Under the pieces are notes generated by a model. The model made no database searches. It saw only the letters and a program-made list of their open reading frames with translations, and was not told the origin of the DNA. The position numbers were made by a program, and so were the translations under genes. This document shows, piece after piece, positions 17,879 through 64,000 of a DNA stretch of 64,000 nt (the stretch's first letter is position 1; each line of letters opens with the position of its first letter). This DNA is from Rebecca billardiae RCC1528. Its lineage: Eukaryota > Protista > Haptophyta. The DNA lies in NCBI GenBank assembly GCA_965240325.2, contig OZ251231.1:1426001-1490000 (forward strand). Reading direction: 5' to 3'.

Positions 17879-18937
17879 CTATTTGCCGTATTTGGTCGCC
17901 GCGACGCGCTCGGCGCTGCTCACGAGAGCGCTGTGGTGTGCCTTGGCTATCATGGAGCGAAACATCTGCATCTGCTTCTGCAGCCTTGCAGCATCCCACG
18001 CGCAGACAGTCCGAACGCGCGTCAGCGGCTCGGTCACAGCACGCACGTGCTCACTGTGAGCTGCGAACATCGCGGCCAGCTTCGAGACGTTGGAAGCGGC
18101 CACGTCGTCAATGCTGTCAAACACGCTGAGGAGGCTCGCGATCTTCATGGAAGTTGCGGAGCGCAGGCAGCCAAGGAGATCAAAGTATGATGGCAAGCCA
18201 CCTCCAATAGCTTCCACAATGGACGGCTTGCAGACAGTATCTCCGCTCCCGAGCCAGCGCTCAGCCCTGCGGATAGCCCAGGCAGTCGGGTGCCGTTGCG
18301 TGAAAACGATCGACAGGCTTGGGATGGCTGCCAGGATCTCGTCCACCAGGTAGGAATATGGCGTGTCGGACAGCACCACAACGCCACTCGTGAGCACGTT
18401 CCGAAGCAGCTCCAACACTCGCGCTGCCGTGCGGGCCGGCGACGGACATGCGTGCCCAGCAGTCGGATTGGTGGCGCATGGGCGGAATTCGTGCTCAATG
18501 AAGCTCGCCATGTCTCCCACCGCTGCTCGTCCCCGGGGATTATTCCACATGTTGCACGTGCTGTTAAAATGGGCTGACGGCATGCCGGCTCGGCAGCCGG
18601 CACGGTGAATCATGCGAGTGGCGGTGGTGCCTTGCCCGACGCTCAGCACCCGCACAGTGATCGACTCACGCGGGAGATTCGCCCAGAATCGAGCGCTCGC
18701 CATGATCAGCTCAGGACTTCTGCGCCGCAGTGCCGGCCACGGCGCCCCGAGTGCCTCTTCGAATGCCCGCTGCTCGGTGTCGTCCCATGAGCAGTTGCTG
18801 GGCGCACATGGGCCTCTGGCCGGTGCAGCACCGAACGGATGGCCACACGCCCTGAGCTTCCAGTGCGGCGGTCGGTGGCCGACCGATCCGTGCACGCGCA
18901 GGATGAGAAGCAGCACCGCACGTGGCACCGGCGCCAT
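17879..18937 (-). CDS. Secretory-pathway sulfotransferase-like P-loop protein (Sulfotransfer_4-like)
   Basis: A signal or anchor MAPVPRAVLLLIL starts at ATG 18937. It has a 5'-PSB-like VLSVGQGTTATRMIH, then SDTPY, and a 3'-PB-like IVFTQRHPTAW..R. Confidence 0.65.
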   Translation of the reverse strand: MAPVPRAVLLLILRVHGSVGHRPPHWKLRACGHPFGAAPARGPCAPSNCSWDDTEQRAFEEALGAPWPALRRRSPELIMASARFWANLPRESITVRVLSVGQGTTATRMIHRAGCRAGMPSAHFNSTCNMWNNPRGRAAVGDMASFIEHEFRPCATNPTAGHACPSPARTAARVLELLRNVLTSGVVVLSDTPYSYLVDEILAAIPSLSIVFTQRHPTAWAIRRAERWLGSGDTVCKPSIVEAIGGGLPSYFDLLGCLRSATSMKIASLLSVFDSIDDVAASNVSKLAAMFAAHSEHVRAVTEPLTRVRTVCAWDAARLQKQMQMFRSMIAKAHHSALVSSAERVAATKYGK

Positions 18938-19022
18938 GCCGCCATCGTACAGTTTACTAAGAATAAGAGACGCACACAGCTCAGGCAGGCGATCGAGATT
19001 GACGCCCGCCAACTGTCACCTC

Positions 19023-19160
19023 ACAGTTTACTATGATTTAACGTGCACACTTGGTTAAGGCGTGATTAACGCCATCCAACACTGCACAAAGACACCGCCA
19101 CAAAACAGACCGGCGCAGGCAGGTGAGGGGCGCGTTGCCGCACCTCATCGAGGCGGCCAT
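19023..19160 (-). repeat. 138-bp inverted repeat, left copy
   Basis: The reverse complement matches 25162-25299 with 2 mismatches by manual alignment. Confidence 0.95.
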
Positions 19161-19296
19161 TGCAGCAAGCGGCCGCCCCGCGCTCGGAGGCACGCGCTCG
19201 AGAGCGCGCTCTGACACCACACGGGGAGGGTGCTGCACCTGGATGTATCATAGTTTGGCCGTCGGGCCGCCGGCGGTAGCCCGGCACGTCGGGTGA

Positions 19297-20262
19297 ATGG
19301 CGGCAGCCCGGCTCGTCGGCGTCGTTTTGCGTCTCTCTGCTCAACCGCACAACATCGGCTACCGCACAGCATCGGCCGCCGTGCTGCTGCTGTGCGCGCC
19401 AGCGATTGCGCTGCGCGATAAAGTGTTCTTTCTTGGGCCCGGCTCAACCAGCTCACGCACGCTCCACCGGTTTATGAAGAGCCCCGGGATGGGATACAGC
19501 TCAACTCACTACCGGTGCTTGAAGGACAGCGAGAGGAAAGGCCGGGAGTTCACAGAAAGCAAGCCACTTTGGGCGCATGACGCAAGAGACCATATCTCCG
19601 ATTCAGTCTGCTGGTCCCGTTTCAACGCCTTCTCAGACGCCGGCGAGCAGGCCGACTTTGAGTGGCTTGACGTGCACTTCGCGGATGCGCGCTTCGTGCT
19701 CAACACGCGGCCGCTGCTGCCCTTGCTCGTGAGCCGGCTTGACCACCACAGGCGTGATGCCAATAGTTCCACGCACTCGCTCGCGTGGCACGAGCTGCCT
19801 CTCCCTCCGGACACGACCGAGTGGATCGTACAGCTCGTCGTGGCGCTGGCGGCGCACCAGGAGCGGGTCCTGCGCTACTTCGGCGCGAGCTGGGAGCGCA
19901 TGCAGCGCTTCGTCGTCGTGTCCGTGCAGACCATGGACCCTTGCGAGGTGGGCGAGCTGCTGAGGTGGGTGACGCGGCCCGACTGGCGGGGCACCCGCAC
20001 GACGCGCGAGCTCGTGGACGACCCAGCCAAGCTGCCAGCGCCCGCCCCGCCGCTCAACTCGAGTGATCGACTGTGTCTCCCAACGAGGCACTTCGGCGAC
20101 GAGGGCGCGCATCCCGCGTCATCGCTGCACGCCGTGCTCTCCGTCGTGAAGGACGAGCTCGGGTGTGATGATCGAGCACTCCATCAGCTCATGTACCGGG
20201 GCTGTGCGCAGCACGGCCGGCTGTACGCAGCAAGGTTCATCAATGGCACCATCGTCGTCTGA
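19297..20262 (+). CDS. Sulfotransferase-like P-loop protein (Sulfotransfer_4-like), secreted/Golgi
   Basis: The N-terminus is hydrophobic. Motifs are KVFFLGPGSTSSRTLH (PSB-like), AFSD and F.WLD..F.DARFVLNTR......SR. Confidence 0.7.
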   Translation: MAAARLVGVVLRLSAQPHNIGYRTASAAVLLLCAPAIALRDKVFFLGPGSTSSRTLHRFMKSPGMGYSSTHYRCLKDSERKGREFTESKPLWAHDARDHISDSVCWSRFNAFSDAGEQADFEWLDVHFADARFVLNTRPLLPLLVSRLDHHRRDANSSTHSLAWHELPLPPDTTEWIVQLVVALAAHQERVLRYFGASWERMQRFVVVSVQTMDPCEVGELLRWVTRPDWRGTRTTRELVDDPAKLPAPAPPLNSSDRLCLPTRHFGDEGAHPASSLHAVLSVVKDELGCDDRALHQLMYRGCAQHGRLYAARFINGTIVV

Positions 20263-20651
20263 AGGGTGGTGCCACCACTGTGGACGCCCCGGAACACCCG
20301 CCTGTGCCACAGTCTGGCGTCGCGGCCAGACTCGCTGGCACTGAGAGCCGCTCAGATGACGCTCTGCTGTCTGCAGCCCACGACACCAGCAGTTCAAGTT
20401 CACGGTCGAGCCTCGGTGTCGTTCATCGTGATCGACACTTCCGCAGCAGACCGCAGACTGAATCGTCGGATAGAATCCGAGAGTCAGTCACGCGTATAAC
20501 TTGGGGGCGGGCCTAAGGCTATGTCGCACCGTCTGCTAGCTGCTATAACTTATAATAAGAGCGCGCATCATATATATATATATATATCAGTGACACTATA
20601 TGCTGACTCAGTGAGCTCGCGGACTCTTCCAGTGACTTATGCCTTATGGTG

Positions 20652-20689
20652 GGGCCCCGAGCAGACTCAGTGGGCCCCCGAGCAGACTC
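20652..20689. repeat. 21-bp tandem duplication (ggg(g/c)ccccgagcagactc) following a short (AT)n run
   Basis: Two copies are directly visible, with (TA)n at about 20570-20587. Confidence 0.7.
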
Positions 20690-21325: not shown

Positions 21326-23590
21326 ATGAACTCGCGACCATGGTGCGCCCGGCAGTGCGCGCTCGCCGGTCGAATTGTCCTGCTCGTCGTGGTGCTGCTC
21401 ATCGCCAGACCGGCCGACGCCGCGAACGTTACGCGCATCCGCATGCCGACGCGCGAGCGGTGCGAGCGCGCGTGGGATTCCGGCGCCACCACGTCGGTCG
21501 CAGCGCTCGCAATCATTCGCAACCGCGCAGACATTGCGCGCGAGTGGGTGGAGCACTACGCCAGTCAGGGCGTGCGGCGCGCCTTCTTGATCGACGACAA
21601 CTCGACGGATGGCCTCGATCGCGTGCTCGGCTGCCTCCCGGCGGCTCACCGGCCGACGGTGTGGCGCACGGCCGACATGGTGCGCGAGCCGCACCAGGTC
21701 TGGCTCATGCGGCAGGTGCAGATGTACGCCGTCGCATTCCGCCGCGTGCACGCCCTCGGCGCGTTCGAGTGGCTGGTCGTCGTCGACATTGACGAGTTCA
21801 TGCTGAGCCGCCTGTGCCCGGCGCGTACGCTCGCGTCCCTGCTCGCCAACGAGCTCAGCGCGTGCGACGTGGTCTCTGCGCCGTGGGTGCTCTTCTGGGG
21901 CCTCGGCTTTGGCGTCGAGCAGTGCGGCCGGATGCTCGAGCGCGTGCGCACGCGCGAGCCGTTCGGCGGCCCCGAGCTCCTCGCCGACCCGCCCGGCCTG
22001 CCCTTCAACGTGCGGCGCAAGCGGCGGCGCGACAGGCGCGGGCGCGAGGCGGCGGTCAACGAGCACAAGTACGCTGTGCGCCTCTCCGCAGTGCTGCCGG
22101 TCGCCACGCAGACCGTCTGGACCGCGGGCGTGCCGAAGGGCGTGAACGCGTCCGGGCTGGGCATACACTCGGCACAGGTGCGCATGGGCTCGCAGGTGTG
22201 CGCCATGCGCCCCGACGACACGCGCAAGCCCAAGTGGGTGCGCAGCGCGTCCCGCAAGGACAGGTTGCAGTCCCCCGACTGGTTTGGCGGCCTCTCCGAC
22301 CGCCACACGGACAAGCTGCTGTTGGCCACGCACCACTACCGCGCGTCGAGCGAGGCGACGTGGCTTGTGAAGGTGAGGGCGCGGGCGCAAGTAGGCGCCG
22401 TGCTGTACGGCGAGCTGAGCGAGCACCGCCTCTTCCTCATGCGCCGCGCCAACGTGAGCGACAACGCGACCCTCTCCGCGCAGCTGCTGCAGAGCCGCCG
22501 CCGGGAGCTAGCGCGCCTGCCCGGCTGGGGCGACGGCGGCGGCACGTGCGCGGCGGCGCTCGCGCGCCCGCACCCGGCGCTCCGCGGTGAGTGCGCGCGC
22601 GGGCCCGGCGGGCACGCCGACGCGTACCTCGTGCCGCGCGCCTCGGCATGCACGAGTGCCTTCCAGGTCGAGCCCTCGGGGCGCACGGGGCGCGAGCGCG
22701 GCGCGCCCGCGGCCGAGGCGCCGGACGGCGCCGATGGTCCGCACCGGCTCTCGCCCGCGCCGCACGGCGCCATCGCGGTGAGCGCCGCGCCGGGCGGCGC
22801 GGCCGTCGACGGGCTCCACGCTGGTCTGTGCGCGGCCGGCGTGCGCACACTCCACGGCGCGCGGAACCGCTCGTGCCACGTGGGCACGGCCGTGCGCGCG
22901 CTGCACGCCCAACTCGTCGCACTTGTGGACGCGCACCCGGGCGGCGGCGGCGCGCTCGAGGCGTGCGCGCTTGCGAGCGAACGCGGCGCGCGCGCGTGCA
23001 TGCCGCCCGGCGCGCACGCCGCCGCGCTCGGGCTGCTCGGGCGCATCGCCCGCGCCCAGCCGCAGGCGCTGCTCGCGCCGTACTGGCTGTGGCTGCGCGA
23101 GCTCCTCGAGCTGCTCCCCGGCTGCATCGTCGTGCACCCGCTCGAGAGCGCGACGGACTGGGCCGGGCGCAGGGCTGCCCCCGAGGACGGCGCCGCAGGG
23201 TCGGCGCGCGCCGCGCAGTGGCCGTCGCGCGGTGCAGCGGCCGCGCAGTACGTCACGTACAACTCGCGCGTGCAGGCACTCGCCGCGCGCAGGCGCGCCG
23301 AGGACGGCAGGTGGCGAGTGGAGGAGTACTGGCAGCTGTGCGCCGCCGATCGCGCCGCTGCCGACAGCCGGGCGGCGGGCGCTGCTTCGCACGCCGCAGC
23401 AGCCGCAGGCGGAGGAGCGCCAGCAGTCTCCGGTGAAGCTGGCGGCATCAACTTGCGGAAGGCCCAGCCGTGCGACGGCGAGGCGGTGCAAGCCGCGCTG
23501 GTGGACCGGCTCACAGGGCCGCTCGCATTGTGCAACATCACTGATGCGCGCGCTCATAATTCATATCCGAGGCACGGTGACGCGATATGA
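21326..23590 (+). CDS. GT-A glycosyltransferase (GT2/GT92-like) fused to a degenerate sulfotransferase-like domain
   Basis: A type-II anchor IVLLVVVLLIA precedes AIIRN...REWVEHY...G...FLIDDNSTDG, the DxD motif WLVVVDIDEF, and HHYR. The C-terminal LHAGLCAAGVRTLH...APYWLWLRELLELLPGCIVVH....DWAGRR parallels the protein at 17879-18937. Confidence 0.75.
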   Translation: MNSRPWCARQCALAGRIVLLVVVLLIARPADAANVTRIRMPTRERCERAWDSGATTSVAALAIIRNRADIAREWVEHYASQGVRRAFLIDDNSTDGLDRVLGCLPAAHRPTVWRTADMVREPHQVWLMRQVQMYAVAFRRVHALGAFEWLVVVDIDEFMLSRLCPARTLASLLANELSACDVVSAPWVLFWGLGFGVEQCGRMLERVRTREPFGGPELLADPPGLPFNVRRKRRRDRRGREAAVNEHKYAVRLSAVLPVATQTVWTAGVPKGVNASGLGIHSAQVRMGSQVCAMRPDDTRKPKWVRSASRKDRLQSPDWFGGLSDRHTDKLLLATHHYRASSEATWLVKVRARAQVGAVLYGELSEHRLFLMRRANVSDNATLSAQLLQSRRRELARLPGWGDGGGTCAAALARPHPALRGECARGPGGHADAYLVPRASACTSAFQVEPSGRTGRERGAPAAEAPDGADGPHRLSPAPHGAIAVSAAPGGAAVDGLHAGLCAAGVRTLHGARNRSCHVGTAVRALHAQLVALVDAHPGGGGALEACALASERGARACMPPGAHAAALGLLGRIARAQPQALLAPYWLWLRELLELLPGCIVVHPLESATDWAGRRAAPEDGAAGSARAAQWPSRGAAAAQYVTYNSRVQALAARRRAEDGRWRVEEYWQLCAADRAAADSRAAGAASHAAAAAGGGAPAVSGEAGGINLRKAQPCDGEAVQAALVDRLTGPLALCNITDARAHNSYPRHGDAI

Positions 23591-23881: not shown

Positions 23882-25042
23882 TCAAAGGTGCTCATCCTCA
23901 GGGTAGGCCTCGTGGCTCCGAAGCCACTGACGATTGGCGCTTGCCCGAGCACGATTGCTCGGCACGTCGTCGAGGCAACGCTTGCGCTCTGCGTGCGCGC
24001 ACGTCCACTGCCGCGGCCACACGGGCCGCTCGAGCAGCGCGCGCATCACAAAGTCGATCATGACGTGGATGAGCGTGTCGCACCGCCCACCGTGGAAGCC
24101 GAAGGCGACGCCCATCGCCCCCTCCACGTCGGACTGGTGGAACTGCAGGCTGTCGTGGAGCGGCGCCTGCTCCGTCAGCGAGCGCAGCGCCTCCTTCCAC
24201 CGCTCGCCGCGCCGCACCTCCCGCTCGCTCGGCAGCGGGTTGAAGTTGACGACAAAGTCGTCGTCGTCAAGGAAGCCGTCGCGCTTGAGCGCGAGGTACA
24301 TGGCCGTGCTCTGCTCGGGCGAAAGGCGGTAGCGCGCGCCGAGCACGGCGGCGAAGAAGTGCGGGCCGACGCGGTGCGGCCACGACTTGAGCTCCGCTGC
24401 CGGCGTGCCAAGACGCCGCAGCTCCAGCACCGCCTCGCGCACCGCCTTGGCGCGCGGGGCGTCGCGCGGGTTGTACGTGAACAGCGTCGGCGGCGCCCCC
24501 TGCAGCATCGGCGAGAGCCTCGCCGGGACCTGGCAGAGGTGCGCAGCGAAGCGGTGGCCGGCGCGCAGAAGATCGAGCGCGGAGACTACCGCCGATGATT
24601 GCGAGAGCAGCACGAGCGGCACGCCTGCGGGCGCCGCTACCTCGCGAGCGGCAAAGCGCACCGCCCAGTCGAGCACGTGCGAGTCGCGCGGGAATTCCCA
24701 CCCGCCGCGCGGCACCCACGCGCGGCCGTTGAGAAAGGTGCGGTCTGGGGCCGAGGGGATGAAGACGCCAAGCTGTGCGCTGACGAGGCGATCCACCAGA
24801 CATATCTTGTCGTAGTAGCCGTTGCACACCGGGCACGCGGCCGACTTGGGGAAGAAGCGCCGCGCCGAGTTTCCACCGCCGTGCGCGACAAAGACAAGCG
24901 CCAGCGGCCGTGATGGCAGCTGCCAGATGAGCTCGATGGTGCCGTTAGCCACACGGTACGTGGGCTCGTCCGCGGGCCCGTCAGCAGCTCGTCCCGTCGC
25001 CGCAGCGAGCAGGAGAGCCGCACCCTGCCACCAGGTCGCCAT
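23882..25042 (-). CDS. Secreted alpha/beta-hydrolase-fold protein
   Basis: A signal peptide MATWWQGAALLLAAA starts at ATG 25042. It has IWQLP..PLALVFVAHG...C.VC.G, a nucleophile-elbow-like PLVLLSQSSA, PPTLF..NPRD, and a late His in FGFHG. Confidence 0.7.
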   Translation of the reverse strand: MATWWQGAALLLAAATGRAADGPADEPTYRVANGTIELIWQLPSRPLALVFVAHGGGNSARRFFPKSAACPVCNGYYDKICLVDRLVSAQLGVFIPSAPDRTFLNGRAWVPRGGWEFPRDSHVLDWAVRFAAREVAAPAGVPLVLLSQSSAVVSALDLLRAGHRFAAHLCQVPARLSPMLQGAPPTLFTYNPRDAPRAKAVREAVLELRRLGTPAAELKSWPHRVGPHFFAAVLGARYRLSPEQSTAMYLALKRDGFLDDDDFVVNFNPLPSEREVRRGERWKEALRSLTEQAPLHDSLQFHQSDVEGAMGVAFGFHGGRCDTLIHVMIDFVMRALLERPVWPRQWTCAHAERKRCLDDVPSNRARASANRQWLRSHEAYPEDEHL

Positions 25043-25161
25043 TATTTTCACCACGCGAACAGTGCTTCCGCATGATCCATACACTGACATACTGTAGTAA
25101 ACTGTACCTTGGTCTAGTACTGTGTTTTGTGGCGAGTATCGTAGACATTCGTCGTACCAGT

Positions 25162-25299
25162 ATGGCCGCCTCGATGAGGTGCGGCAACGCGCCCCTCACC
25201 TGCCTGCGCCGGTCTGTTTTGTGGCGGTGTCTTTGTGCAGTGTTGGATGGCGTCAATCACGCCTTAACCAAGTGTGCACGTTAAAACATAGTAAACTGT
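25162..25299 (+). repeat. 138-bp inverted repeat, right copy
   Basis: Matches the reverse complement of 19023-19160 (136/138). Confidence 0.95.
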
Positions 25300-25528: not shown

Positions 25529-26458
25529 TCAGGGCCTGCTCACGCGGCGCCGGAGCATGGCGCGCACTTCGGGCGGCACGTCCGGCGCGGTGAGTGCCTG
25601 CTGCACGCGCCAAAAGTTGTATATCTTCATGTGGTGCGGCGGCGGTGGCGCGCGCGTGCCCGCCTCGGGCTGCAGCACAGCCGCGATCGCCTCGACTGGC
25701 ACCGGCAGGCCCCATGCTGCGAGCACGGCGCGAAATGCAAGCGCGGACCGCGGCAGTGCGAGGCTGTCGTGCGTGAACTCGGCGAGGTCCTCGAAGATCG
25801 CGACGTGCGGCGAGACAGCATAGCCCCGGGCGGCCAGTGCCTCGCGCCTATTGATCACCTGCCGGCGCAACTGCGTCAGGTGGCCAGCGATGGTGCTCGG
25901 ATCGAAGCGTACGAGCAGCTTGCCGGGCGCGGCCTCGCTTTGGGAGCGGCGGCGGCGGAAGCACAGATCGGAGACGGTGCCGTTGCTGAACACGGGCGTC
26001 CCCTTCGATCTCGGAACGAAGCAGTCGTTCACGCTGCAGATCAAGTAGTCCAGCCTGTTGGCGCGGTAGATGTACACGAGCCGCACCCCCGCGCTCCGAA
26101 ATGCGCGCACCATCGGCTCTGAGGACATGTGGTTCAAGTCAGCCTTGAAGACGAGGGCGTGGCCCTCCGAGACAGCGCGCTTGTTCATCTCAAGGAATGC
26201 GCCATGCGCGCCCCGGCTGGGCGTGTAGAACGGGTTCTTCTCGGGCTTGAGAATCTCGTGCCCTGTGGCCTTGATCTGGACGTGCGTCGCGTTGCTCACG
26301 ATCTTGCGCAGCGTCGTGAGAGTCCACGTCGAGCCCGAGCAGCCTTGCATCGCAATCGCGCGCGGCGCAGTGTCGAGGGCCAGCGCGACGCCGCTGGGCG
26401 CCAAGCTACCGAGGAAGAGCGCCACGTTCAGCGCCGATCGACGCGTCATCCTTAGCAT
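25529..26458 (-). CDS. Stf0-like sulfotransferase-fold protein
   Basis: The likely start is MLRMTRRSALNVALFLGSLA (ATG 26458). Motifs are AMQGCSGSTW (PSB-like), HEIL, VFK, LVYIYRANRLD and IFEDL. The start is uncertain. Confidence 0.6.
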   Translation of the reverse strand: MLRMTRRSALNVALFLGSLAPSGVALALDTAPRAIAMQGCSGSTWTLTTLRKIVSNATHVQIKATGHEILKPEKNPFYTPSRGAHGAFLEMNKRAVSEGHALVFKADLNHMSSEPMVRAFRSAGVRLVYIYRANRLDYLICSVNDCFVPRSKGTPVFSNGTVSDLCFRRRRSQSEAAPGKLLVRFDPSTIAGHLTQLRRQVINRREALAARGYAVSPHVAIFEDLAEFTHDSLALPRSALAFRAVLAAWGLPVPVEAIAAVLQPEAGTRAPPPPHHMKIYNFWRVQQALTAPDVPPEVRAMLRRRVSRP

Positions 26459-27319: not shown

Positions 27320-27950
27320 CTACCCCTTGAAGAAGAAGCGCATCGCGTCGAGCGCGGCGCTTGCGCCGAGCACGAGCGAGGACTCGGCCAGATCGGCGAG
27401 CACGCCGCCCTCGACGAGCGCGCGCGCGGCCCACGGCGCGAGCTGGCCGAGCGCGAGCAGCAGCGGCTCCTCGAGGGCGAACGTGCCGAGCAGCGCCGCG
27501 CCCCACGACGCGAGCATCGCCTCGGTGCGCGCGCGGCCGAAGAGGCGTCCGTACACGATCACGAGGGCGCACAGGCCTGTGTACAGGGCCAGCATGGCCG
27601 CCCACGCGAGGGGCGAGCGCGCCCACCGCGGCGGCGGCGCGCACGGGCAGAGCACGCGCGCCCACTCGGCCGCGCGCCGCTCCGCCGCCCTCTGCCGCGC
27701 GAACCACACGACCATCTCGAGCTCGTCCACGCGCAGGTCGGCGTCGAGATCGAGATCTCGCAGCAGCCGCCGCCGCTCGTGCGGCAGCAGCGGGTCGCCC
27801 AGCTCGGCCATGATCAGCCCGACGCCCGCCTCGTCCACGCGCCCGTCGCCAGTCGGATCGCACCGCGAGAACGCGGCGCGCAGCGCGGCGAGCTCGGCAC
27901 TGGTCAGCTCGGCGTGTGCTCTGAAGAGCGAGCTGCGGCGCGCGCGGCGT

Positions 27951-27982
<32 letters not shown>

Positions 27983-30900: not shown

Positions 30901-31399
30901 GGTGCGTGCACGCGCAGTAGAGCAGCGACGGCTCGGCGCCGTCGGGCGGCGCGCCCAGCGTCGTGCACCCCTCCGCCGACCACTCGCGCCGCGCCTCGTC
31001 CCACCAGTGGCACGCGTCCACGCGGCCGCACTCGGGCCCGTGGTACGGCGGCTCGCACGCGCAGCCGCGCAGCCCGCCGCCCAGCTCGACGCACGCGCCG
31101 CGCGCGCTGCACGGCGGCGCCGCCGCGCCGTCGGCGGCGTGCGCGGCGCACGACGCGGACGGCTCGACGGCCGCCGCCGCCTCTCGCGCGGGCGGCAGCC
31201 CGAGCACGACCGGCTCGCTCAGCCCCGAGATTGCAATCTGGGCGCCCGTCGTCGGGTCGCGCAGCTGTACGCGCAGCACGCCCGTGCGCAGCGGGCCGAG
31301 CGCGCCGCTCTGGTTGGCGGGCTCGGCGTGCACATTCGAGCCGAAGGCGATGAGCACCACGTCGACGGGCGCGTCGGCCGCGCGCGCCGCGCTGCCGCC

Positions 31400-31430
<31 letters not shown>

Positions 31431-49398: not shown

Positions 49399-49429
<31 letters not shown>

Positions 49430-52400: not shown

Positions 52401-55400
52401 GCCGCGCGCGCGCGCCGCTCGCTCGCGTCGCGCTTGTCGCGCGCGGCGAAGAAGAGGAGCGTGAGCGCGTTGGCGCCCGCCATGCCGAGGACGAGGCCGT
52501 ACACCCACGGGTTCTCCGCCAGCTCGGGCGCGGCGAGCACCGCGAAGTCCTCCCCCGACAGCGTGTTCACGTTGAACGACTCGGCGTCCGAGCTGAACTG
52601 GTCGGCACTCGTCGGCACAGAGAGACCTCCAAAGTCGGTGAGGTGGTCGCACGCGCAGTACAGCCAGTCGGGCTTGGCGCCGGCCGGGAGCTCGCGGTCC
52701 TCGGAGGGGAGCGTCTCGCACCCCTCGCTCGACCAGCGCTCGCGCGCCTCGTCCCAGTACTGGCACGTGTCGCGCAGCTCGCACGCCGCGCCGTACCACG
52801 GCGGAGGGCACTCGCACGCGCCACCAAAGCACGGGGAGCGCCCGTTGCACTCGTCGAACTCGACGCACGTGCCGGTGGTGCCGTAGACCTTGGCGGTGGG
52901 CCTGGCCTGCTGCAGCGGCAGCGCGACGATCAGCGGCTCCGCCAGCCCGCCGATCTCGAGCTCGTCGCCCGACGCAGCCGAGCGCAAGGTCACGGACAGC
53001 ACGCCCGTGCGCAGCCCGCTGCCCGCGCCCGAGCTCGCGCCGAGCGCCAGGCTGACGCCGCCGCCGCCGCCGCCCGCCGTCGCGTTGGCGCCGTGGGCGA
53101 CGGCGTGCACGTTGCGATCGAACGAGGCGAACACGACGTCCACGCCGCCGCTGAGCGCGCCCGCCGGCTGCCCGTCGAGCAGGCCGGACGGGACGGCGAG
53201 AGACGCGGCGCCGCCCGCGCCGCCGAGCGCGCCGCCCGCGCCCGCGCCGCCAAAGCCGAGCAGCGCGGCCGGGTCGACGCGCGTCGCGCTCAGGTTGAGG
53301 TTGGCGCCGAGCACTTCGAGCGGGGGCTCGCCCACCACCGCGCCGGCGAGCAGCGCGCCCGCCAGCCCCGACGCCGCCGCGCGCGCCTCCTCCTCCACCG
53401 CGCCCAGCTCGTCCAGGCTCAGAACGCTCGCGTTGGCGCCGAGCACGCCGTCGATAGTGCGAAAAAGCGCGGCGGCGGTGTCGGCGTCGACGCCGACGGC
53501 GGCAGACTCGCGCGCGAGCGAGGCGGCCTGCGCGATCGACGACGCCTGCGACGGCCCGTCGAGCGGCACGCCGCTCGAGACCACGCTGTCGAGCACGCCC
53601 GCGCTCAGCTTGCGCGACGTCGCCGTCGAGACCGCCACCGCCGCCGCGTCGCCGAGCACGGCGATCATCTCGCGCACGACGGCGGACGCGCTCTCGTTGG
53701 CCGAGTTGGACGCGTCCAGGAACGGCGCGCACGGCACGAGCGACTGCGCGAGCGCGCCGAGGATCTGCTTCGCCGCGTCGCCGCTCGCGCGCTCGACCGC
53801 GTACCGCGCGCTCTCGAGCGCGCCGGGCACGGTCGCGCCGCACGTGCTCGACGGGAGCGGCAGCACGAGCACGTCGACGGCGGCGGCGGCCGCGGCGCCG
53901 AGCGCGTCGAGCACCTCGACGCCGAGCGAGAGGTTGCCCGCGGGCAGCACGGCGCGCGCGGCGGGCGTGCGCAGCGTCTCGCCGAGCGACGCGCGCGCGC
54001 CGCTGCGCGCCGCGGAATACGAGAACGCGTAGCGCAGCGGCAGGTCCTCCGGGTCATCCGCCCAGCCGAGCGCCGAGAGGGCGTGCGGGGAGATGAGGGC
54101 GAACGCGCCCGAGCGCGGCGAGACGCGGAGCACGCCGCCGTGCGGCGGCCGGTTGATGAGCACGCGCACCTCGGCGCTCGCCACCTGCTCGCTCCCGCGC
54201 ACCTCGAGCCGGAACGCGTACTCCGCGCCCGGCGTGAGCGCGCCCGAGCTGAGCGCGAGCGCCGCGCCGCGCACGCCCGTCGCCGAGACGCCCGGTGCGG
54301 TCAGGTCGAACGGCACCTCGGCGCCGCCCACGATGGCGGCCGCGCTCCACAGCCGCGAGTACGACACGAGGCCGCGCGCCTGCAGCGAGGCGGAGGCCTC
54401 GTCGAGGCTCGTGCTCAGCACGAGCCGCTGCGTCGGCCGCTCCCACGTCGGGTTGTGCTTGCGAGCCTCGAGGGGCGCAAACGAGATCGAAGGCACCACG
54501 CCCGAGATCACCCGCACCCGAACGGACGCGCCGGCCGGTGCGAGGCCGGGCTTGGAGAGGGAGAGGCTCGCGCGCCACACGCCGAGCGAGAGCGTGCCGG
54601 GCGGCACGAGCAGCGCGCGCGCGTTGTGCACCGTCGCGTTGCGCGCCACCGCCTCCGCCAAGCCCACCGCCGCCGCCTCCTCCGCGCCGCCGCCGCCCGC
54701 ACCGGCAGCGCTGCTCGCGAGCTCGAGCGACCAGCTGAAGCGGAGCGCCGCATCGGGCACGCGCGCGCCGCTCGCGTCGAGCGCGCGCGGCACGTTAGGG
54801 TCGGACGAGGCGGAGGCGTCGACGTTCAGCTCGGATGCGTCGGACGCGCGCCGGTCGCCGCCGGCGATCACCGCGCGCAGCGGCTCCGGCACGACGCGCA
54901 GGCGCACGCTCGCGGAGGTGCGCGCGCTCGGCTGCGCGCGCATGAACGCCACGAGCTGAAGCGTGTACGTGCGGCCGGCGCGCAGCGAGAAGGGCGGGAG
55001 GAGCAGCGTGGCGCGCGTGGCGGCGGAGAGGTCGAGCTCGGCCGCGGCGTCGGGCTCGGGCTCGCCGCTCTCCGACAGCGTCGCGTTCAGCGCGCGCCAC
55101 TCGAAGCCGACCGCCGCGCCCTCGCCCACCGCCCAGCACTCGGCCAGGCTCGCCGCGCCGAGGAGGAGCGCCTCTGCGGACGCGCGCACGGCCTGCTCGA
55201 ACGGCCCGTCGATCACGAGGCTGGGGCTCGGCACGGCCGTGCGCGACACCTCCCACTCCGCCACATTCGACGGCACGCCGAGGAACGACGTCACGCGCAG
55301 CTGGAACACAAAGTGCTCGCCGCGCACGGACGGCAGCTCGAGCGCGCGCGTGTCGGGCGGGAGCGCCGCCAGCACCGCGTTCAGCTCGGACGCAAAGTCG

Positions 55401-58400
55401 GAGCGCGCCGGGTCGACGTGCCACGAGTACGTGGCGGGCTGCAGGCCGCCGCCCACGGACGCGGAGCCGTCGAGCCGCAGCGGCTCGTCCGGACACGCCG
55501 ACAGCTGCGTCGGCCCGACGAGCGCCGCCACGGGCGTCGGGCAGCGCGTGAGGCACGGCGCGTCCGCGTCCACGGTCGCGCCGGCGCCGTGCGGCGTGCA
55601 GAGCTCGTGCGGGCATGTCGCGTTCGACGCGGCGGCGGGCTTGAGCACGCCGCCGCGCACGCCGACGCGCGAGCCCGGCCCGAGGGTCGAGCGGATGCTG
55701 AGGCCGACCACGAGCGTGCTGCCACCCTCCCAGTGGCACATGGGCTCGTCGGCGGGCGCGTCGGCGCCGTCGCCGCGCAGAGCGGCGACCGTGTCGTCGT
55801 CGAGGACGAGCCGGCACGGCTGCTGCCCCACCATCGCCGCGCGGTTCGTCGGCTGCTCGCCGAACTGGACGACGAGCTGCGTCGCCTCGTCGTTGAACGC
55901 GGCAGATACGATCTCGGGCGCGTGCAGCCCAACGAACGTGAACCACACGCCCTCGCCGCCGCCGCCGCCGTCGGCCGGCGCCGGGTGGAACTGCTGCCCG
56001 TTGAGCGAGACGCGCACGCGCGCGAACCCCTCCGCGCCGTAGCCGGTGCGCAGCGAGATCGACGCGTCGTCGGCGCCGAGCGTGGCCTGCGCGAGGGTGG
56101 GGCCGAGCCGGACGAGCGGCGCGGGCGCCTCCGCCGTGCTCGCCGCCAGCGCGCCGAAGCCCGAGCCGGACACGACGGCGGTGAGCCCGCCGATCGCGAG
56201 CCCACTCGACGGCGAGATTGCAATCACGACGGGCGGCTCGTAGAAGACGAACTGCGTGGGCGCGGCGGCGGTGGAGGCGGCCGAGCCGGCGTTGAGCGAG
56301 AGCGCGAGCGAGGCGTTGCGCGCGCCGCCCACGGCCGGCGTCGTGCACACCGCGCGCGCCGTGCCGTCCGACAGCGGCGCGAGCAGCGTCGCCGCCACCG
56401 AGCACTCCGCTCCGCCGTCGAGCACGCAGCACAGCTGGCCGTCGCCAAAGTCGCGGAAGCCGCCACCCAGCAGCGTGACGCGCGTGCCCCCGCCGACGGG
56501 CCCGCCCGGCGGCCAGATCGCGTCCACGCGCACGGCCGAGGGCTCGTACAGCTCGACTCGCAGCGCGTCGAAGAGCTCGGGCACGGCGTTCGCCCCGCCG
56601 TTGAGCGAGAGCCGCAGCGAGTAGAGGCCAGCAGGCGCGCGCGGCGGCGTGTGGCAAGCCACGCGCGACTCGCCGAGCACGGCGCCCTGCACGTCGAGCG
56701 CGGCGGCGCCGGGCGCGCTGAAGGTGCACACGGTGGCGCCCAGGTCCACAAAGCCCGCGCCGCGCAGCTCGAGCGCCGTGCCCGCGCCGACGGGCGCGCC
56801 TGCGGGCGAGGCGCCGTCCACGCGCGCCGTGTACAGCTGCAGCACTGCGCCGGAGTCCGTGTATGCGTGGCCGTCGAGCGACACCTCGACGCCGATCGAG
56901 CGGAGCGGCGACAGCGGCGAGATGTACACACCCTGGCAGACGAGCGCCGACGCGCCGGCGTCCGGCATCGTCGCCTCCACCGCCTCGCCCACGCCGCCGA
57001 AGCGCACGCGCAGCCCGCCGTAGTCGGCGAAGTTGGCCCCTTGCACGCTCACGGTCCCGACCTGCGCGCCGCGCGGCCAGCCGGGCGGCGCGAGCGAGTC
57101 GATCGTCACGGCGCTCAGGTCGTAGTAGGCGAAGCCGTCTGCGGCCAGGATCGGGTCGAAGGGGCGGCCCGTCTGCGGGTCGGCGAGCTCGGCGAGGATG
57201 CTCACCGCCACCGCGCCCGCCTCCGCGCGCGCGGGCGCGGCGCACTCAAGCCGCGTCTCGCTCACGCTGAGCACCGCCGCTCGCGCGCCGCCCACGAGGC
57301 AGGTGATGTTGCCGAGCAGCGGCGCGGCGCGCGAGAAGCCGGAGCCGAGCAGCGTGATGGTTGTCGGCGCGCCCACCGCCGCGCCCGTCGGCACGACGCG
57401 CTCGATCTCGGCGAGCGCCAGCGGGTCCGCCGGCAGCGCCACCGACAGCGCCGTCCGCGGGAAGAGCGCCGCCGGCAGCGCTCCGCCGCCGTCGCCTCCG
57501 CCGCCTTCGCCGCCTTCGCCGCCGCCGCCAAAGCGGTAGCACAACAGGAGGCCTGTGTGGGTCGAGGCGAAGGTGAAGTTGGCGGCGCCGCCGCTGACGG
57601 TGGCCGTGACGTTCTCCACCGCGAGCCCCGGCTGCGCGCACGCCGCGCTCCCGCCGCCCTCGCCGAGCGCCACCTCGCGCCGCACCCACCACGCCAGGTC
57701 CCCGTCCATCAGGCCGACGCCCCCGAAGCGGACCGTCTCGGCCGCGCGCACGGCGCCGATCGCGACGCGCGGCGTGCGCACCTCGAGCACGTCGAGGCCC
57801 TGCAGCTGCGCGTACAGCCGGAAGGGCTTGTCGCCGAAGGCGTAGCACAGCCTGAACCCCAGCCCGCCCGCGCTGGGCAGGAACGTGTGCCGGACGCTCG
57901 CGCCCTCGCCCCCGCCCTCGCCGAGCGTGACGGGCTGGCTTCCGCCAAACATCTCGAGAGGGCCGCCCTCGCACGACGTGGCGGAGGCGGGCACCCAGAA
58001 CGCGGCGTCCGCCGCGGAGACGCCCGCGCCGAGCAGCGTCGCCGTGTGCGCCGTCCCCACCACCGTGCGGTTCGGCCCGCCCACCGCGCGCAACCCGAAC
58101 ACCTCCAGGGTAATTCCGGAGTAGGCGCGCCAAGGCTCGGCCGCGTGCCGAAAGCACAGCTGCAGGGCGCCGTCGCTCGGGCTGAGCGGCGTGAACGCGG
58201 CCTCGCCGAAGCGGACGGTCCACGCGCCGCCGTACTCGGGCCTCGCGCCCGACTCGGCGCCCTCCGCCGCCGCGCACTCCGCCGCGTCGCGCACCCAGAA
58301 GCCGCGGTCGCCGTCGGCGATCCCAACGCCCACCAGCGGAACGGCCTCGGCCGCGCCCGCGACCGCGACGGTGCGCGCCGGCCCTTGCACCTCGGCGACG

Positions 58401-61400
58401 ACGAGGCGGTGGTCGGCGTACAGCGCGAAGGGCTCGTCGCGGTGGCGGTAGCAGAGCCGCGCGTCGGCCACCGCGCGCCCGAAGCTCACCGACACCTCGC
58501 CGCCCGCCGGCACCTCGGCCTCTGCGAGCGGCGCGGCCGCAGCCGCTCGCTCGCACGCCGTGGCCGTGCCGTTGGCGAGCACCCAGCGCGCGGCGTCGCC
58601 CGCCGAGACGCCGACGCCGCGGAAGGCGAAGGGCTCGGCGACGGCGAGGACGGCGAGCGTGCGCCGCGCGCCGCTCAGCCCGAGCACGTCGAGCGTCGTG
58701 TTGCCGTACAGCGCGAACGGCTCCGAGCCGAACCGAAAACAGAGCACGCGGCCGGTGCCGGCGCGGCCGGCAGTTGGCAGCGGCGCCGCACCGCCCGCGA
58801 CGAGCTGCGTGCCGCCTGGCGCGTTGGCGGCGGCGCAGCTGTCGGCGGCGGCGCCGCTCTGCACCCAGCGCACCGCGTCGCCGTCCGCGACGCCGTACCC
58901 GCTCGGCACGAACGCCTTCGCCACGCCCTTCACCGCGTCGACGTGCGAGCGCGCGCGCGCCAGTCCGCGCACATGCAGCCGCGCGCTCGAGTAGAGCACT
59001 TCGCTCTCGCCTGCAAACGTGTAACACAGCTGCAGCCCGCTGGGGTGCTCGGCGGTGGTGGCCGTCGGCGTGAAGCGGAGGGCACCGGCCGCGTCGACGA
59101 GCAGCGCGCCGCCGAACGCGCCGCCGCCCGCGTCGCCCGCAGGCTCGTCGGCGCACGCCGTCGCGTCGGCGCGCACCCAGCGCGCCCGGTCGCCGGGCGT
59201 AATGCCGACGCCGCGCAGCGGCACGGCCTTGCCCACGCCAGCGACCGCGATCGTCTCGGCGGGCCCGGAGATGTCGAAGACGTCGAGCTCGAGCGAGGCG
59301 GCGGCGGACGCGTTCACGTACACGCCCGTCCCTTCGAAGCGGAAGCACAGCGCCAGGCGGAGCGCGGGCTCCGACGGCGTGAACAGCGCCGCGCCGCGCA
59401 CAACGCTGAACTCGCCGCCCAGCGCATCGGCCGCGCCGCCGGCCGCGCACGCGGCCGCGCCCGGCGGCGCCCAGTACGCCGAGTCCGAGCCGCCGAGCCC
59501 GACGCCGCTGAGCGCCAGCGCCTCGGGCACGCCGGCGACCGCGACCGTGCGCGCCGGGCCCGTTACGCCGAGCGCCTGCAGCGTAGGCCGCGCGTACGCT
59601 CGCCAGCCCGACCCGCGCGCTCGCTCGAAGCGAAAGCAGAGGGCGAGTGTGCCGTTCGGCGTGGGCGGCACGGCGCGCAGGGTGAAGCGCGCCCAGCCGT
59701 CGTCGTCGACGGTGCCCACGCCGCCGTACGCGCCGAGCGCCTCGCCCGCCGCGCAGTGCGCCGCGTCCTCTGCCCAGAAGAAGCCGTCGCCGCCGCCCAC
59801 GCCCACGCCCGCAAGCTGCACGGCGACGGGCGCGCCGACGGGGGCGCGCGCGCTCGCCGGGCCTTGCACGTCGAGCACGTCGAGCGCGGCGGCGTGCGCG
59901 AAGAGCGCCGGCGGCTCGGTGTCGCTGAACTGCACGCACGGCGCGAAGCCGAGCCCGGCGCTCCCAAACTCGAAGCTCGCCGTCCCGTTCGCGTCGAGCG
60001 GCCGCGCGGCCGTCGAGCCCGCAGGCGCCTCGGCCGACGCAGCGCACGCGTCCGCGCCCGCGCCGGGCGGCAGCCAGCGCACGAGCACGCCGCCGGCGCG
60101 CACGCCGACTCCGCTGAGCGAGATGGGCGTGGGCACGGCGCGGAGCACGGACACGAGCGCCGGGCCGTCCACGCCGAGCGACGCGAGCGTGTGCGCGCGC
60201 ACGAGCACCGCTCGCTCGCCTCGGAACGAGTAGCAGAGCAGCAGGCGCGACGCGACGACTGTGGCGGTGAGGCGCACGGCGCCGCCTGTGCCCACCTCGA
60301 GCAACCCGCCGTACTGGGCGCGCGGCGGCTCGCTCGCGCACTCGAGCGCGGTGCTGTCCACCCACCACGCGCGGTCGCCCGGCCCGACGCCGCGCCCGGC
60401 GAGGCGCAGCTCCTTCTCCACGCCTGACACGATCGCATGCCGCGTGCCAAACCGCGCGCCGCCGCCCTCGCCCTCGCCGCCGCCGCCGCCACCGCCGCCG
60501 CCGTCGCCGTCGTCGCCGTGATCGTCAAAGCCGAGCAGCTCGAGGGTCACGTTGACGCGCGCGGCGCCGAGGCCGGCGAACGCGTAGCAGAGGGCGAGCC
60601 GCGTGCCGCCGCCCGGCGCGAGCGACGTGAACGTTGCCACGGCGCGCGAGCCGACGACGGCGAGCTCGCCCGCGCCACCGGCGTCGGAGGCGGCAGCCGC
60701 CGAGCAGTTGGCACTGCCGTCTGACGCGTCGATCCAGCGCGCGGTGTCGCCCGTGGCCACGCCGAGCCCGCTGAAGCTGAGCGGCGTGGGCACCCCCGCG
60801 ACCGCGAACGCGCGGCTCACGCCGCGCAGCTCGAGCACGTCGAGCAGCACCGTCGGCTCGGCGCGCCACGCGGCCGTGCCGTTGCGAATCGTGCACAGCA
60901 CCGCCGCCCAGCCCGCTTCGTCGAACGCCCACTCCAGGGCGCCATCCGGCGGCAGCGGGATGCCCGCGGGCCCTCCGAACGCGTCGGAGGACGGCAGCGA
61001 GCAGTTCGCCGTGCCGAACGGCGCCCAGCGCACCGGCGCGCCGGGCGAGAGCCGCTCGTCATCCAGCGGCAGCCGCAGCGTCACGCGCGAGCCGACGAGC
61101 GCGCGCAGCGAGGTCGTGTTGTAGCGGAGTGGCGGCGGCGGCGAGGGCGGCGGCGGGCTCGGCGGCGGCGGGCTCGGCGGCGGCGAGGGCGGCGGCGAGG
61201 GCGGCGGCGAGGGCGGCGGCGCGGGCGGCGGCGAGGGCGGCGGCGCGGGTGGCGGCGCGGGCGGCGGCGAGGGCGGCGGCGTGGGTGGCGAGAGCGGCGG
61301 CGGCGACGGTGGTGACGGCGGCGGGAACGGCGAAGCGCGCGGGGGCGGCGGCGGGCTCTGAGGCGGGCTCGGCGGCGGCGGGCTCGGCGGCGGGCTCGGC

Positions 61401-64000
61401 GGCGGGCTCGGCGGCGGGCTCGGCGGCGGGCTCGGCGGCGGGCTCGGCGGCGGCCCCGGCGGCGGGCTCGGCGGCGGCGGGAAGGGGATGCATTCCGTGC
61501 CGTCATTGATCTCGGCGGCAGAATCGAAATTCGACATGGTCGGGTCGACGCACCCCTCGAACACCCGGCGCGGGGTGGCGACGAGCGGCGCGCCGAACGC
61601 CGCGGCGAGCTGCGCGGCCGAGGCGGCGCGCAGCACGCCGATCACATCCGTCGCGCCCGGGCCCGACGGTTGGTACAGCCGCAGCACCACGCGCGCGGAC
61701 GCGGCCGTCACGGAGTGCACGCTCACCCAGCCGCGCGGCACGCCAGCCAGCGCCGCCGCGCCGGCCTCGAGCTCGCTCTGCGCGGAGGGCGAGCTGAGCG
61801 CGTCGACGTCGGCGTCGAGCGTGATGGCCGCGTACACGGTCGTGCCCGGTGGCGCGGGCGGCGGCGGCGCGGGCGGCGGCGGTGACGGCGAGGGCGGCGG
61901 CGGCGGGCTCGGCGGGGGCGAGGGCGGAGGCGTGGGCGGCGGGCTGGGGGGTGGCGACGGCGGCGGGCTCGGCGGCGGCAGCGGGGGCGGTGGGCTCGGT
62001 GGCGGGCTCGGTGGCGGCGAAGGCGGCGGTGCAGGTGGCGGGCTTGGCGGCGGCGACGGCGGTGGGCTCGGCGGAGGGCTCGGCGGAGCGCCCGGCGGTG
62101 GCGGGCTGGGCGGAGGCGAAGGCGGTGGGCTCGGCGGCGGCGACGGTGGCGACTTGGGCGGCGGCGGACTCGGTGGTGGGCTCGGCGGTGGGCTTGGCGG
62201 TGGGCTTGGCGGAGGCAGCGGTGGCGGCGGGCTCGGCGGCGGGCTCGGCGGCGGCGACGGCGGAGGGCTCGGAGGCGGCGAAGGTGGCGGGCTCGGCGGC
62301 GGCGACGGCGGAGGGCTCGGAGGCGGCGAAGGCGGCGGTGAGGGCGGCGGTGCGGGCGGCTGGCTCGGCGGCGGCGGGCTGGGCGGCGGGCTCGGCGGCG
62401 GCGACGGCGGCGGGCTCGGCGGTGGCGGCGACGGCGGCGGCGACGGCGGCGGCGAGGGCGGCGGGCTCGGCGGTGGCGGGCTGGGCGGCGGGCTGGGCGG
62501 CGGGCTGGGCGGCGGGCTCGGCGGCGGGCTCGGCGGTGGCGATGGCGGCGGCGACGGCGGCGGCGACGGCGGCGGCGACGGCGGCGGGCTGGGCGGCGGG
62601 CTCGGCGGCGGGCTGGGCGGCGGGCTGGGCGGCGGGCTGGGCGGCGGGCTCGGCGGCGGGCTCGGCGGTGGCGATGGCGGTGGGCTCGGCGGCGGGCTTG
62701 GTGGTGGGCTCGGCGGCGGGCTTGGTGGCGGCGATGGCGGCGGGCTCGGCGGCGGGCTCGGCGGCGGGCTCGGCGGTGGCGATGGCGGCGGCGACGGTGG
62801 TGGTGACGGCGGCGGCGAAGGCGGCGGGCTCGGCGGCGGGCTCGGCGGCGGACTTGGCGGCGGGCTCGGCGGCGGGCTCGGCGGCGGGCTCGGCGGCGGG
62901 CTCGGCGGTGGCGATGGCGGTGGGCTCGGCGGCGGGCTTGGTGGTGGGCTCGGCGGCGGGCTTGGTGGCGGCGATGGCGGCGGGCTCGGCGGCGGCGATG
63001 GCGGCGGGCTCGGCGGTGGCGATGGCGGCGGGCTCGGCGGTGGTGATGGCGGCGGCGACGGCGGTGGTGACGGCGGCGGCGAAGGCGGCGGGCTCGGCGG
63101 CGGGCTCGGAGGCGGGCTCGGCGGCGGGCTTGGCGGCGGGCTCGGTGGCGGGCTCGGTGGCGGTGACGGCGGCGGTGACGGCGGCGGGCTCGGCGGCGGG
63201 CTCGGCGGCGGGCTCGGCGGCGGGCTCGGCGGAGGTGACGGTGGCGGCGACGGCGGCGGGCTCGGCGGTGGCGCAGGCGGCGGGCTTGGCGGCGGGCTGG
63301 GTGGTGGGCTTGGAGGCGGCGGGCTCGGCGGTGGCGACGGCGGAGGCGATGGCGGCGGGCTCGGTGGCGACGTTGGAGGCGGCGGGCTCGGCGGCGGCGA
63401 AGGCGGCGGCGAAGGCGGCGGAGACGGGGGCGGCGACGGGGGCGGACTCGGCGGCGGGCTTGGTGGCGGGCTTGGTGGTGGGCTCGGCGGTGGGCTCGGC
63501 GGCGGGCTCGGCGGCGGGCTCGGCGGCGGGCTCGGCGGCGGGCTCGGTGGTGGCGACGGCGGTGGGCTAGGCGGCGGAGGGCTAGGCGGCGGTGACGGCG
63601 GGGGACTCGGCGGAGGGCTTGGCGGTGGTGACGGCGGCGGGCTCGGAGGCGGGGTCGGCGGAGGACTTGGTGGCGGGCTCGGCGGCGGCGGGCTGGGCGG
63701 CGGACTTGGCGGCGGCGACGGTGGAGGCGAGGGCGGCGGGCTGGGCGGAGGTGAGGGCGGTGGGCTCGGTGGTGGGCTCGGTGGTGGGCTCGGCGGCGGT
63801 GGGCTTGGCGGTGGGCTTGGCGGCGGGCTCGGTGGTGGGCTCGGCGGCGGGCTCGGCGGAGGCGAAGGCGGCGGGCTTGGCGGTGGACTCGGAGGCGGTG
63901 ACGGCGGTGGGCTTGGAGGTGGAGACGGCGGCGGGCTTGGTGGAGGCGAGGGCGGCGGCGGCGAGGGTGGCGGCGAGGGTGGCGGCGAGGGCGGCGGCGA
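48295..64000 (-). CDS. Giant polycystin-1-like receptor 2 (5' end beyond window): SPPP stalk, 12 Cys-containing ~95-aa repeats, IPT/TIG, REJ, EGF-like, GPS, 5 TM, EF-hand pair
   Basis: The Pro frame appears open from 64000 into the 4302-aa ORF. GPS is CQYWD...W...GC...CACDHL/TDF and the EF-hands are DADGSGQVDIDE and DLDADGLVSFAE. Introns at 48829-49087 and 48436-48588 join TM4/TM5 (LAIAWLAVW..., SLGVE|EPIII), collinear with paralogue 1. Confidence 0.88.
48863..48958. repeat. Intronic 20-bp minisatellite (gtgygcggtcagtggtgcgt, about 5 copies)
   Basis: Directly visible inside the predicted intron 48829-49087. Confidence 0.85.
51180..51475 (-). repeat. Three ~30-aa coding repeats (RVLAPAALTPRSQVARISPEEGAEVG) in the cytoplasmic loop of receptor 2
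   Basis: Near-identical units at both DNA and protein level. Confidence 0.85.
61850..64000 (-). repeat. Coding (SPPP)n extensin-like array of receptor 2, truncated by the window
   Basis: 12-bp ggcggcgggctc-type units run continuously to the window end. Confidence 0.95.

Follow-up and report, generated by a model that had tools for sequence, protein, structure and literature searches.

A dense island of divergent sulfotransferase genes around two giant proline-rod REJ-GPS proteins in the haptophyte Rebecca billardiae

The stretch of DNA analyzed here, called the window below, comprises 64,000 nucleotides of contig OZ251231.1 of Rebecca billardiae RCC1528 (assembly GCA_965240325.2, positions 1,426,001 to 1,490,000 of the forward strand). 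Its right part, from position 17,879 onwards, holds seven small genes (A to G) situated around and between two giant genes that stand in tandem on the minus strand. The first-pass annotation of this DNA had described two tandem receptors rich in SPPP repeats placed amid enzymes, with two sulfotransferase genes between the paralogs, and this layout is real, F and G being the genes between the giants. Our analysis indicates that the island is a genuine, unusually dense set of predicted secretory-pathway glycan-tailoring genes, with at least five established or probable genes of the sulfotransferase fold that uses 3'-phosphoadenosine-5'-phosphosulfate (PAPS), coming from at least four families. 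The features of the island are as follows.

Gene A, 17879..18937, minus strand: predicted secreted or lumenal sulfotransferase of the Sulfotransfer_4 family, 352 aa from the first ATG
Left copy of the 138-nt repeat, 19023..19160: inverted relative to the copy at 25162-25299, in the intergenic region between the divergent genes A and B
Gene B, 19297..20262, plus strand: divergent sulfotransferase fold of the Sulfotransfer_4 family, 321 aa, with an altered PAPS loop
Gene C, 21326..23590, plus strand: GT-A glycosyltransferase with a predicted type-II anchor (GT-A domain at residues ~65-173) and a C-terminal half of ~350 aa rich in Ala, Gly and Arg
Gene D, 23882..25090, minus strand: orphan protein, predicted to be secreted, 402 aa
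Right copy of the 138-nt repeat, 25162..25299: presence/absence polymorphism
Gene E, 25529..26458, minus strand: candidate Stf0-type sulfotransferase, 309 aa from the MLRMTRR start
Giant 1, 27320..44162, minus strand: signal peptide, RCC1 blades, SPPP rod, TIG-like region, REJ, GPS, transmembrane region, EF-hand
Gene F, 44422..45648, plus strand: candidate (carbohydrate) sulfotransferase of the Sulfotransfer_2 type, head-to-head with giant 1
Gene G, 46596..47456, minus strand: probable Sulfotransfer_3-type sulfotransferase, 286 aa
Giant 2, 48295..64000, minus strand, running off the window: SPPP rods, three TIG domains, REJ, GPS, transmembrane region, EF-hand

Six sulfotransferase-like domains of about three subfamilies had been claimed for these genes. 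Five of them (in A, B, E, F and G) are retained, with assignments of differing strength and spread over four or more families, whereas the sixth, at the C-terminus of C, is not. Searches with profile hidden Markov models (HMMs), which had been proposed as the check on these domains, confirmed A (Sulfotransfer_4), C (GT-A) and the REJ and GPS domains of the giants; G was matched below the threshold, and no direct Pfam match was obtained for B, E, F, D or the C-terminal tail of C. As a result, one of the six claimed sulfotransferase domains, that of A, passes a curated family cut-off.

Gene A is matched by Sulfotransfer_4 (PF17784) with 28.2 bits, the cut-off being 22.8, and its translation contains both PAPS-binding motifs, VGQGTTAT at the 5'-phosphosulfate-binding site (5'-PSB) and QRHPTAWAIRR at the 3'-phosphate-binding site (3'-PB). 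For gene B, an exhaustive phmmer search collected 76 representative relatives, and PF17784 matches 32 of the 46 aligned members of this family, the profile of which also matches the sulfotransferase Cpz8 from PDB (9kf1) at 7e-4. The AF2 model of B, built on the family alignment, has a predicted local distance difference test score (pLDDT) of 86; its Foldseek matches are almost exclusively sulfotransferases, and so are all of its best 50 VIA matches (Z 8.4-10.6 over 161-229 residues), including TPST, Cpz8, NDST and 3-OST. Judged by this model, a sulfotransferase fold of the Sulfotransfer_4 kind is well supported for gene B.

The motifs of B are GPGSTSSRT and TRPLLPLLVS, and its PAPS loop reads GSTSSRT, versus GKTGTTT in most relatives. 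The near-invariant residues of the family, H71, R138 and S146, are kept, while the Lys, Gly and Thr that the loop normally has are gone, and with the loop altered in this way the activity of B is open to doubt. A metagenome scan with the B-family alignment identified three loci, and the layout of the one that was looked at (L015) is bacterial-looking.

The other three assignments are weaker. Gene G is matched by Sulfotransfer_3 (PF13469) at an E-value of 5e-4 with 20.8 bits, below the cut-off of 27, the match spanning positions 2-214 of the 216 in the profile, and it contains the motifs GTMRAGTTT and ERPAAQVECS; it is a probable Sulfotransfer_3-type sulfotransferase. In the Atlas feature search, the nearest named clusters of E are Stf0/Sulfotransfer_3 (score 0.94, 176 shared features), and those of F are haptophyte Sulfotransfer_2 clusters (score 0.95, 175-186 shared features); for each of these two genes all 10 of the 10 best named matches agreed on the family or clan. 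The motifs are QGCSGST and RANRLDYLICS in E, where YRANRLDYLICS is seen in the translation, and HFHKAGGSS and RRPFERWAS in F, where LRRPFERWASQY is seen. Both the 5'-PSB and the 3'-PB motif are thus recognizable, in the expected order, in the translations of E, F and G, and E and F are probable sulfotransferases, according to their motifs and cluster similarity.

The NCBIfam and PHROG libraries gave no match for the small proteins searched, E and F among them; single-sequence phmmer against PDB returned nothing for A, D, E, F and G; no homolog of F was identified, including in a word-indexed homolog search; and scans of viral contigs with E and F yielded nothing. Compared with Sulfotransfer_4 (PF17784), Sulfotransfer_2 (PF03567), Sulfotransfer_3 (PF13469) and Stf0 (PF09037), the five retained proteins of the window share both PAPS motifs and a fold that is modeled for B and putative for the others; they differ in being extremely divergent, the 5'-PSB loop of B being a derived one.

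The sulfotransferase-like proteins of the window do not recognize one another by BLASTP or HMM searches, and hence they are not recent tandem copies. In particular, hhalign of A against the B-family profile produced no match, although A is Pfam-positive, and the B-family HMM, run against the six-frame translation of the window, found B alone.

The density of such genes was estimated with a binomial model for the nine genes of the region, assuming gene independence and 15,000-30,000 genes per genome. By this estimate, a run of nine genes with five or more sulfotransferases should turn up in fewer than 0.1 places per genome, provided that sulfotransferases account for no more than about 3% of genes; under gene independence, chance is an unlikely source of the density unless their share reaches 3-5%. 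In Phaeocystis genomes, InterPro sulfotransferase domains are of the order of 60-100 per genome (PMC12480563 supplement), sulfotransferases being an expanded family in haptophytes (PMC12480563). Since only one gene of the present locus is counted at curated thresholds, the true number of sulfotransferases may be several-fold higher than such counts, and since standard Pfam annotation detects that one gene only, published counts in such algae are probably large underestimates.

All seven small proteins were said to carry secretory signals. By sequence inspection, each has an N-terminal hydrophobic stretch, which is obvious for B, C and E; those of A, D, F and G are weaker yet still signal-like. 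Such predicted signals would imply action in the lumen, unlike the cytosolic members of the sulfotransferase families, which act on small molecules. The open reading frames (ORFs) of genes A to G are all intact, and their GC content by codon position is of the coding type.

The claim of one GT-A glycosyltransferase in the island agrees with the data for gene C, the N-terminal part of which is matched by Glyco_tranf_2_4 (PF13704) at 1.2e-12 (48.6 bits, cut-off 27.5), with a sub-threshold match of GT92 (PF01697) at 3e-4. A DID motif of the DxD type is located within VVVDIDEF, and the GT-A domain is preceded by a strong N-terminal membrane anchor.

The C-terminal half of C is part of a continuous coding frame, with the pattern of GC content at third codon positions (GC3) unbroken to about 23300, and the sulfotransferase domain that had been seen in it is not supported. 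BLASTP of this tail against A gives a colinear alignment, with an E-value of 0.19 only, and both PAPS motifs are degenerate (APGGAAV and PLESATDW). No homolog was found for residues 420-754, hhalign against the B-family profile gave nothing, and the single-sequence AF2 model of the tail, with a pLDDT of 41, is unusable.

The assignment of gene D to secreted alpha/beta-hydrolases likewise could not be confirmed, HGGG and S-x-S-x-A (S-Q-S-S-A) being the only hydrolase-like features visible. The protein has no match in NCBIfam, PHROG or PDB, and the word-indexed homolog search found D itself only. Exact sequence look-ups returned D alone. An identical D protein is encoded on an independent DNA contig of the Logan assemblies (L001, ERR14847151).

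Both giants have at least 5,000 residues each. Giant 1 comprises an uninterrupted ORF of 5,024 codons (27320-42394, minus strand) and, at 42.4-44.2 kb, spliced exons of its 5' part that encode RCC1 blades (Pfam RCC1); the ATG at 44162 opens a predicted signal peptide. Its Pro-rich stalk of ~2,260 aa occupies about residues 121-2380. In giant 2, no stop codon is encountered from 64000 to 48932, and three TIG domains pass the Pfam threshold, which TIG does in this giant only. The transmembrane tail at the C-terminus of giant 2 is encoded in a separate frame (48298-48741, minus strand), past an apparent stop at 48929, and matches the tail of giant 1 at 1e-9, which implies one or more introns in the 3' part of the gene and a gene end near 48295. 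The ORF of this tail is split by a GC-rich insert.

Ser-Pro(3-5) repeats, a hallmark of the extensin type, are present in both giants: SPPP occurs 332 times in giant 1 and 179 times in the part of giant 2 that lies in the window. SPn motifs are the substrates of hydroxyproline (Hyp) O-glycosylation in extensins and other hydroxyproline-rich glycoproteins, and Golgi sulfotransferases sulfate glycans.

Pfam REJ matches the two giants at 4.6e-25 and 2.4e-32, and both have a GPS match above the threshold and an EF-hand match. Over REJ-GPS they are 38% identical to each other, and the duplication that produced them is therefore old. Their description as polycystin-1-like holds for the REJ-GPS module: as in polycystin-1 and the sea-urchin REJ receptors, REJ is followed by the GPS autoproteolysis motif and transmembrane segments. 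It does not hold for the rest, as Pfam searches at E <= 0.01 gave no PLAT or PKD_channel match in either giant, so that the PLAT and channel half of polycystin-1 was not detected, and the giants depart from those receptors in their SPPP rods, in heads of RCC1 or TIG type and in the EF-hand at the C-terminus.

The link between the enzymes and the SPPP giants is positional only. Pfam scans of the region found no prolyl 4-hydroxylase (P4H), no Hyp-arabinosyltransferase (HPAT) and no other gene of Hyp glycosylation. Sulfotransferase genes E and G have no detectable similarity, while the giants that they accompany are 38% identical, and thus there is no sign that a giant was duplicated jointly with an enzyme. 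Conserved linkage, which had been suggested as a check, was not found for the B family, the sole family examined that has homologs: on seven further contigs, which come from marine eukaryotic metagenomes and from related samples of high GC content, a small sample with no true orthologous locus among them, B-family genes adjoin unrelated genes, namely PEMT, a mitochondrial carrier, CDC37, phosducin, PEPCK, an EGF protein and one 2-oxoglutarate (2OG) oxygenase. Conserved synteny is impossible for proteins that lack detectable homologs, as is the case with D, F and the C-terminal tail of C.

Among the neighbors of the B-family genes, the 2OG oxygenase and the EGF-repeat protein alone are suggestive. 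On a Phaeocystis-like contig (L008:191-3379), the B-family sulfotransferase is located 1.4 kb from a 2OG-Fe(II) oxygenase of the prolyl-hydroxylase type (PF13640), a pairing of the kind that the model of the first-pass annotation predicts, seen in this single case. On another contig (L004:5997-8384), a protein of 795 aa, the N-terminal domain of which is of the B-like Sulfotransfer_4 kind, belongs to a cluster of 139 members (the cluster of P0004) in marine metagenome assemblies, including Tara, and adjoins a 935-aa EGF-repeat protein of the teneurin/tenascin type.

We favor, with moderate confidence, the reading that the region is a general island of Golgi tailoring genes in a plastic chromosome stretch, rather than a dedicated enzyme-substrate unit with the two giants. 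In its favor are the domain assignments, the N-terminal hydrophobic signals, the density of sulfotransferase genes under independence, the expansion of this family in haptophytes (PMC12480563), the orphan status of D, F and the C-terminal part of C, the occurrence of B relatives beside unrelated genes elsewhere, and the fact that the sulfotransferase families are mutually unrecognizable. The region also shows signs of plasticity: the 138-nt insertion is polymorphic, positions 47734-48268 hold a duplication in tandem, and there is a (CT)n array. The enzymes would enter the endoplasmic reticulum and the Golgi via their N-terminal signals or anchors, the sulfotransferases would use PAPS to sulfate glycans on secreted material, and C would extend glycans. 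The clustering would then represent an accumulation, perhaps with shared regulation, of fast-evolving, lineage-specific secretory genes. That the giants are substrates of these enzymes is plausible but unproven.

Several observations weigh against the preference for a general tailoring island. F and giant 1 are divergently oriented, with start codons 188-260 bp apart, and sulfotransferase genes E and G are each located directly downstream of a giant on the same strand; the head-to-head pair and the same-strand E and G are the expected look of a co-regulated unit of a scaffold and its enzymes. Besides, E and F are placed among the sulfotransferases solely by language-model similarity and motifs.

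The same arrangement, together with the interleaving of the genes, speaks for the proposal of the first-pass annotation that the neighboring enzymes glycosylate and sulfate the SPPP rods of both giants, producing a sulfated surface filament or coat. The secretory signals of the enzymes, which look lumenal, and the 332 and 179 SPPP motifs fit this proposal, as do the expansion of the P4H and HPAT families in haptophyte (Phaeocystis) genomes (PMC12480563 and its supplement) and two algal precedents discussed below. In its stronger form, the sulfotransferases, the GT-A enzyme and D would act in sequence on Hyp-linked glycans, be expressed from shared or adjacent promoters, and build a sulfated hair or coat of micrometer length. 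What counts against a dedicated unit is the lack of a P4H, HPAT or other Hyp-glycosylation gene in the scanned region, the dissimilarity of E and G beside related giants, the scattered neighbors of the B family, and the fact that Sulfotransfer_4 relatives of solved structure (Cpz8, SgdX2) act on small molecules. On this balance we consider the dedicated unit unlikely, and its stronger form, with enzymes acting in succession, equally doubtful.

The precedents are a gene cluster and a glycoprotein. In brown algae, a microsyntenic cluster of FK-GFPP, a sulfotransferase and a hydrolase is conserved (PMC11468063). As in the present case, an alga has a carbohydrate sulfotransferase gene in physical linkage with other genes of a glycan pathway, in that cluster with a hydrolase gene among them, and the function was inferred from this linkage. 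The brown-algal cluster is kept across brown-algal orders and ties the sulfotransferase to nucleotide-sugar synthesis, whereas the locus of R. billardiae has at least five unrelated sulfotransferases, and the neighbors are candidate substrates rather than enzymes of precursor supply.

SSG 185 of Volvox is a sulfated Hyp-rich glycoprotein, rod-like, with a Pro/Hyp block and a highly sulfated glycan (PMC2115946), and its chemistry is the one that was proposed for the SPPP rods. It is a chemically characterized matrix protein of a green alga with a Hyp block of 80 residues (PMC2115946), while the giants, with rods of more than 2,000 residues and REJ-GPS membrane anchors, belong to a haptophyte. 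We came across no account of a locus in a eukaryote where the gene of a structural glycoprotein is linked with those of its tailoring enzymes. If the positional link proved to be functional, the locus would be a rare eukaryotic case of a substrate clustered with its tailoring enzymes.

About as improbable, in our view, is a neutral co-location of expanded, locally duplicated families that has no functional meaning, with some of the "sulfotransferases" possibly being inactive relics. The expansion of sulfotransferases in haptophytes (PMC12480563) would favor it, and A and B, with the tail of C as a possible third copy, resemble the products of an ancient local Sulfotransfer_4 duplication; the loss of the usual residues from the PAPS loop of B and the degeneration of both motifs in the tail of C point in the same direction. 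GC3 is 0.72 in A, 0.71 in G and 0.71-0.80 across A, G and B, compared with 0.85-0.92 in the other small genes and 0.87-0.95 in neighboring genes typical of this DNA, and the values for A and G agree with this explanation too. On the other side, four unrelated sulfotransferase families in ~14 kb of non-giant DNA are improbable under independence if such genes make up less than 3-5% of the total, no ORF is disrupted and all have coding-type composition, and D is identical in a second sample.

The lower GC3 of A, B and G is suggestive of younger or less-expressed genes and is not evidence of transfer. A foreign origin of the small genes was considered and is not favored: GC3 is only mildly lower in A, B and G, and the GC dip is mainly due to ordinary amino acid composition, with GC1 and GC2 values usual for globular proteins, and to AT-richer intergenic DNA.

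Least of all, and very improbably, the B-C-D block (19023-25299) would be a 6-kb transposon cargo that brought in the enzymes between 138-nt terminal inverted repeats: the two repeats, 99% complementary to each other, enclose precisely three genes, but they are the sole such pair around the sulfotransferase genes, neither a target-site duplication nor a transposase ORF is visible at the block, the outer end of the arm is ACAGTTTACT, a motif of many intergenic regions in the window, and a second sample keeps D without the right arm, for which the composite transposon is rejected. This sample is the Logan contig from the same species (ERR14847151), which is 99.9% identical to the window, with one mismatch in 1,822 nt. 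It carries D and its upstream flank, and the junction at the place of the missing arm reads CCGGTACAG (window 25158-25299 versus L001:1-90). Since the right arm is absent there while D is kept, it is a recent short insertion/deletion polymorphism, not the end of a mobile 6-kb unit.

The cell coverings and secreted polymers of haptophytes matter for marine carbon cycling, and the genes for their biosynthesis are almost unknown. The locus provides a compact candidate set for such work: at least five sulfotransferases, predicted to be lumenal and coming from different families, one glycosyltransferase, and the two giants, the proline rods of which may serve as acceptors.

The intergenic motif at the outer end of the repeat arm, ACAGTTTACTA, is not confined to the repeats. 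In the form ACAGTTTACT(A/T), with at most two mismatches, it has 10 occurrences in the window, where 0.55 would be expected, all of them intergenic and near the start or end of a gene. These positions suggest that it may serve this alga as a general regulatory, promoter, transcription-start or transcript-end signal. The sites are as follows.

ACAGTTTACT(A/T) sites: 3342, 3364, 3405, 5536, 17776, 18949, 19023, 25095, 25289, 25446

Other repeats lie around F and G. Between the start of G and the end of giant 2, there is a tandem duplication of ~270 bp (47734-48268) with 81% identity and a 43-nt core that is 98% identical. The space between the convergent genes F and G contains a (CT)n-rich microsatellite array (45726-45885) and three copies of a GC-rich unit of ~105 bp that includes GATGAGG-TGAGGTCGTAGT (46128-46460).

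The GC content of the window is 60-84%. Diacronema lutheri, the only pavlovophyte with a published genome, has 73% GC, and 45% of its genes are single-exon (PMC8379373). According to the Pfam scan, the first 17.8 kb of the window (1-17.8 kb) contain genes for a WD40-kinase, a Sel1/MYND protein, an INSIG-like protein and a calpain, and two further ORFs without an assignment; all of these are unrelated to the sulfotransferase island, and the enrichment consequently begins at the position given in the first-pass annotation. After the calpain-like gene, a segment of 0.9 kb (12500-13400) without a long ORF has a GC content of 48-51% and forms the most AT-rich part of the window.

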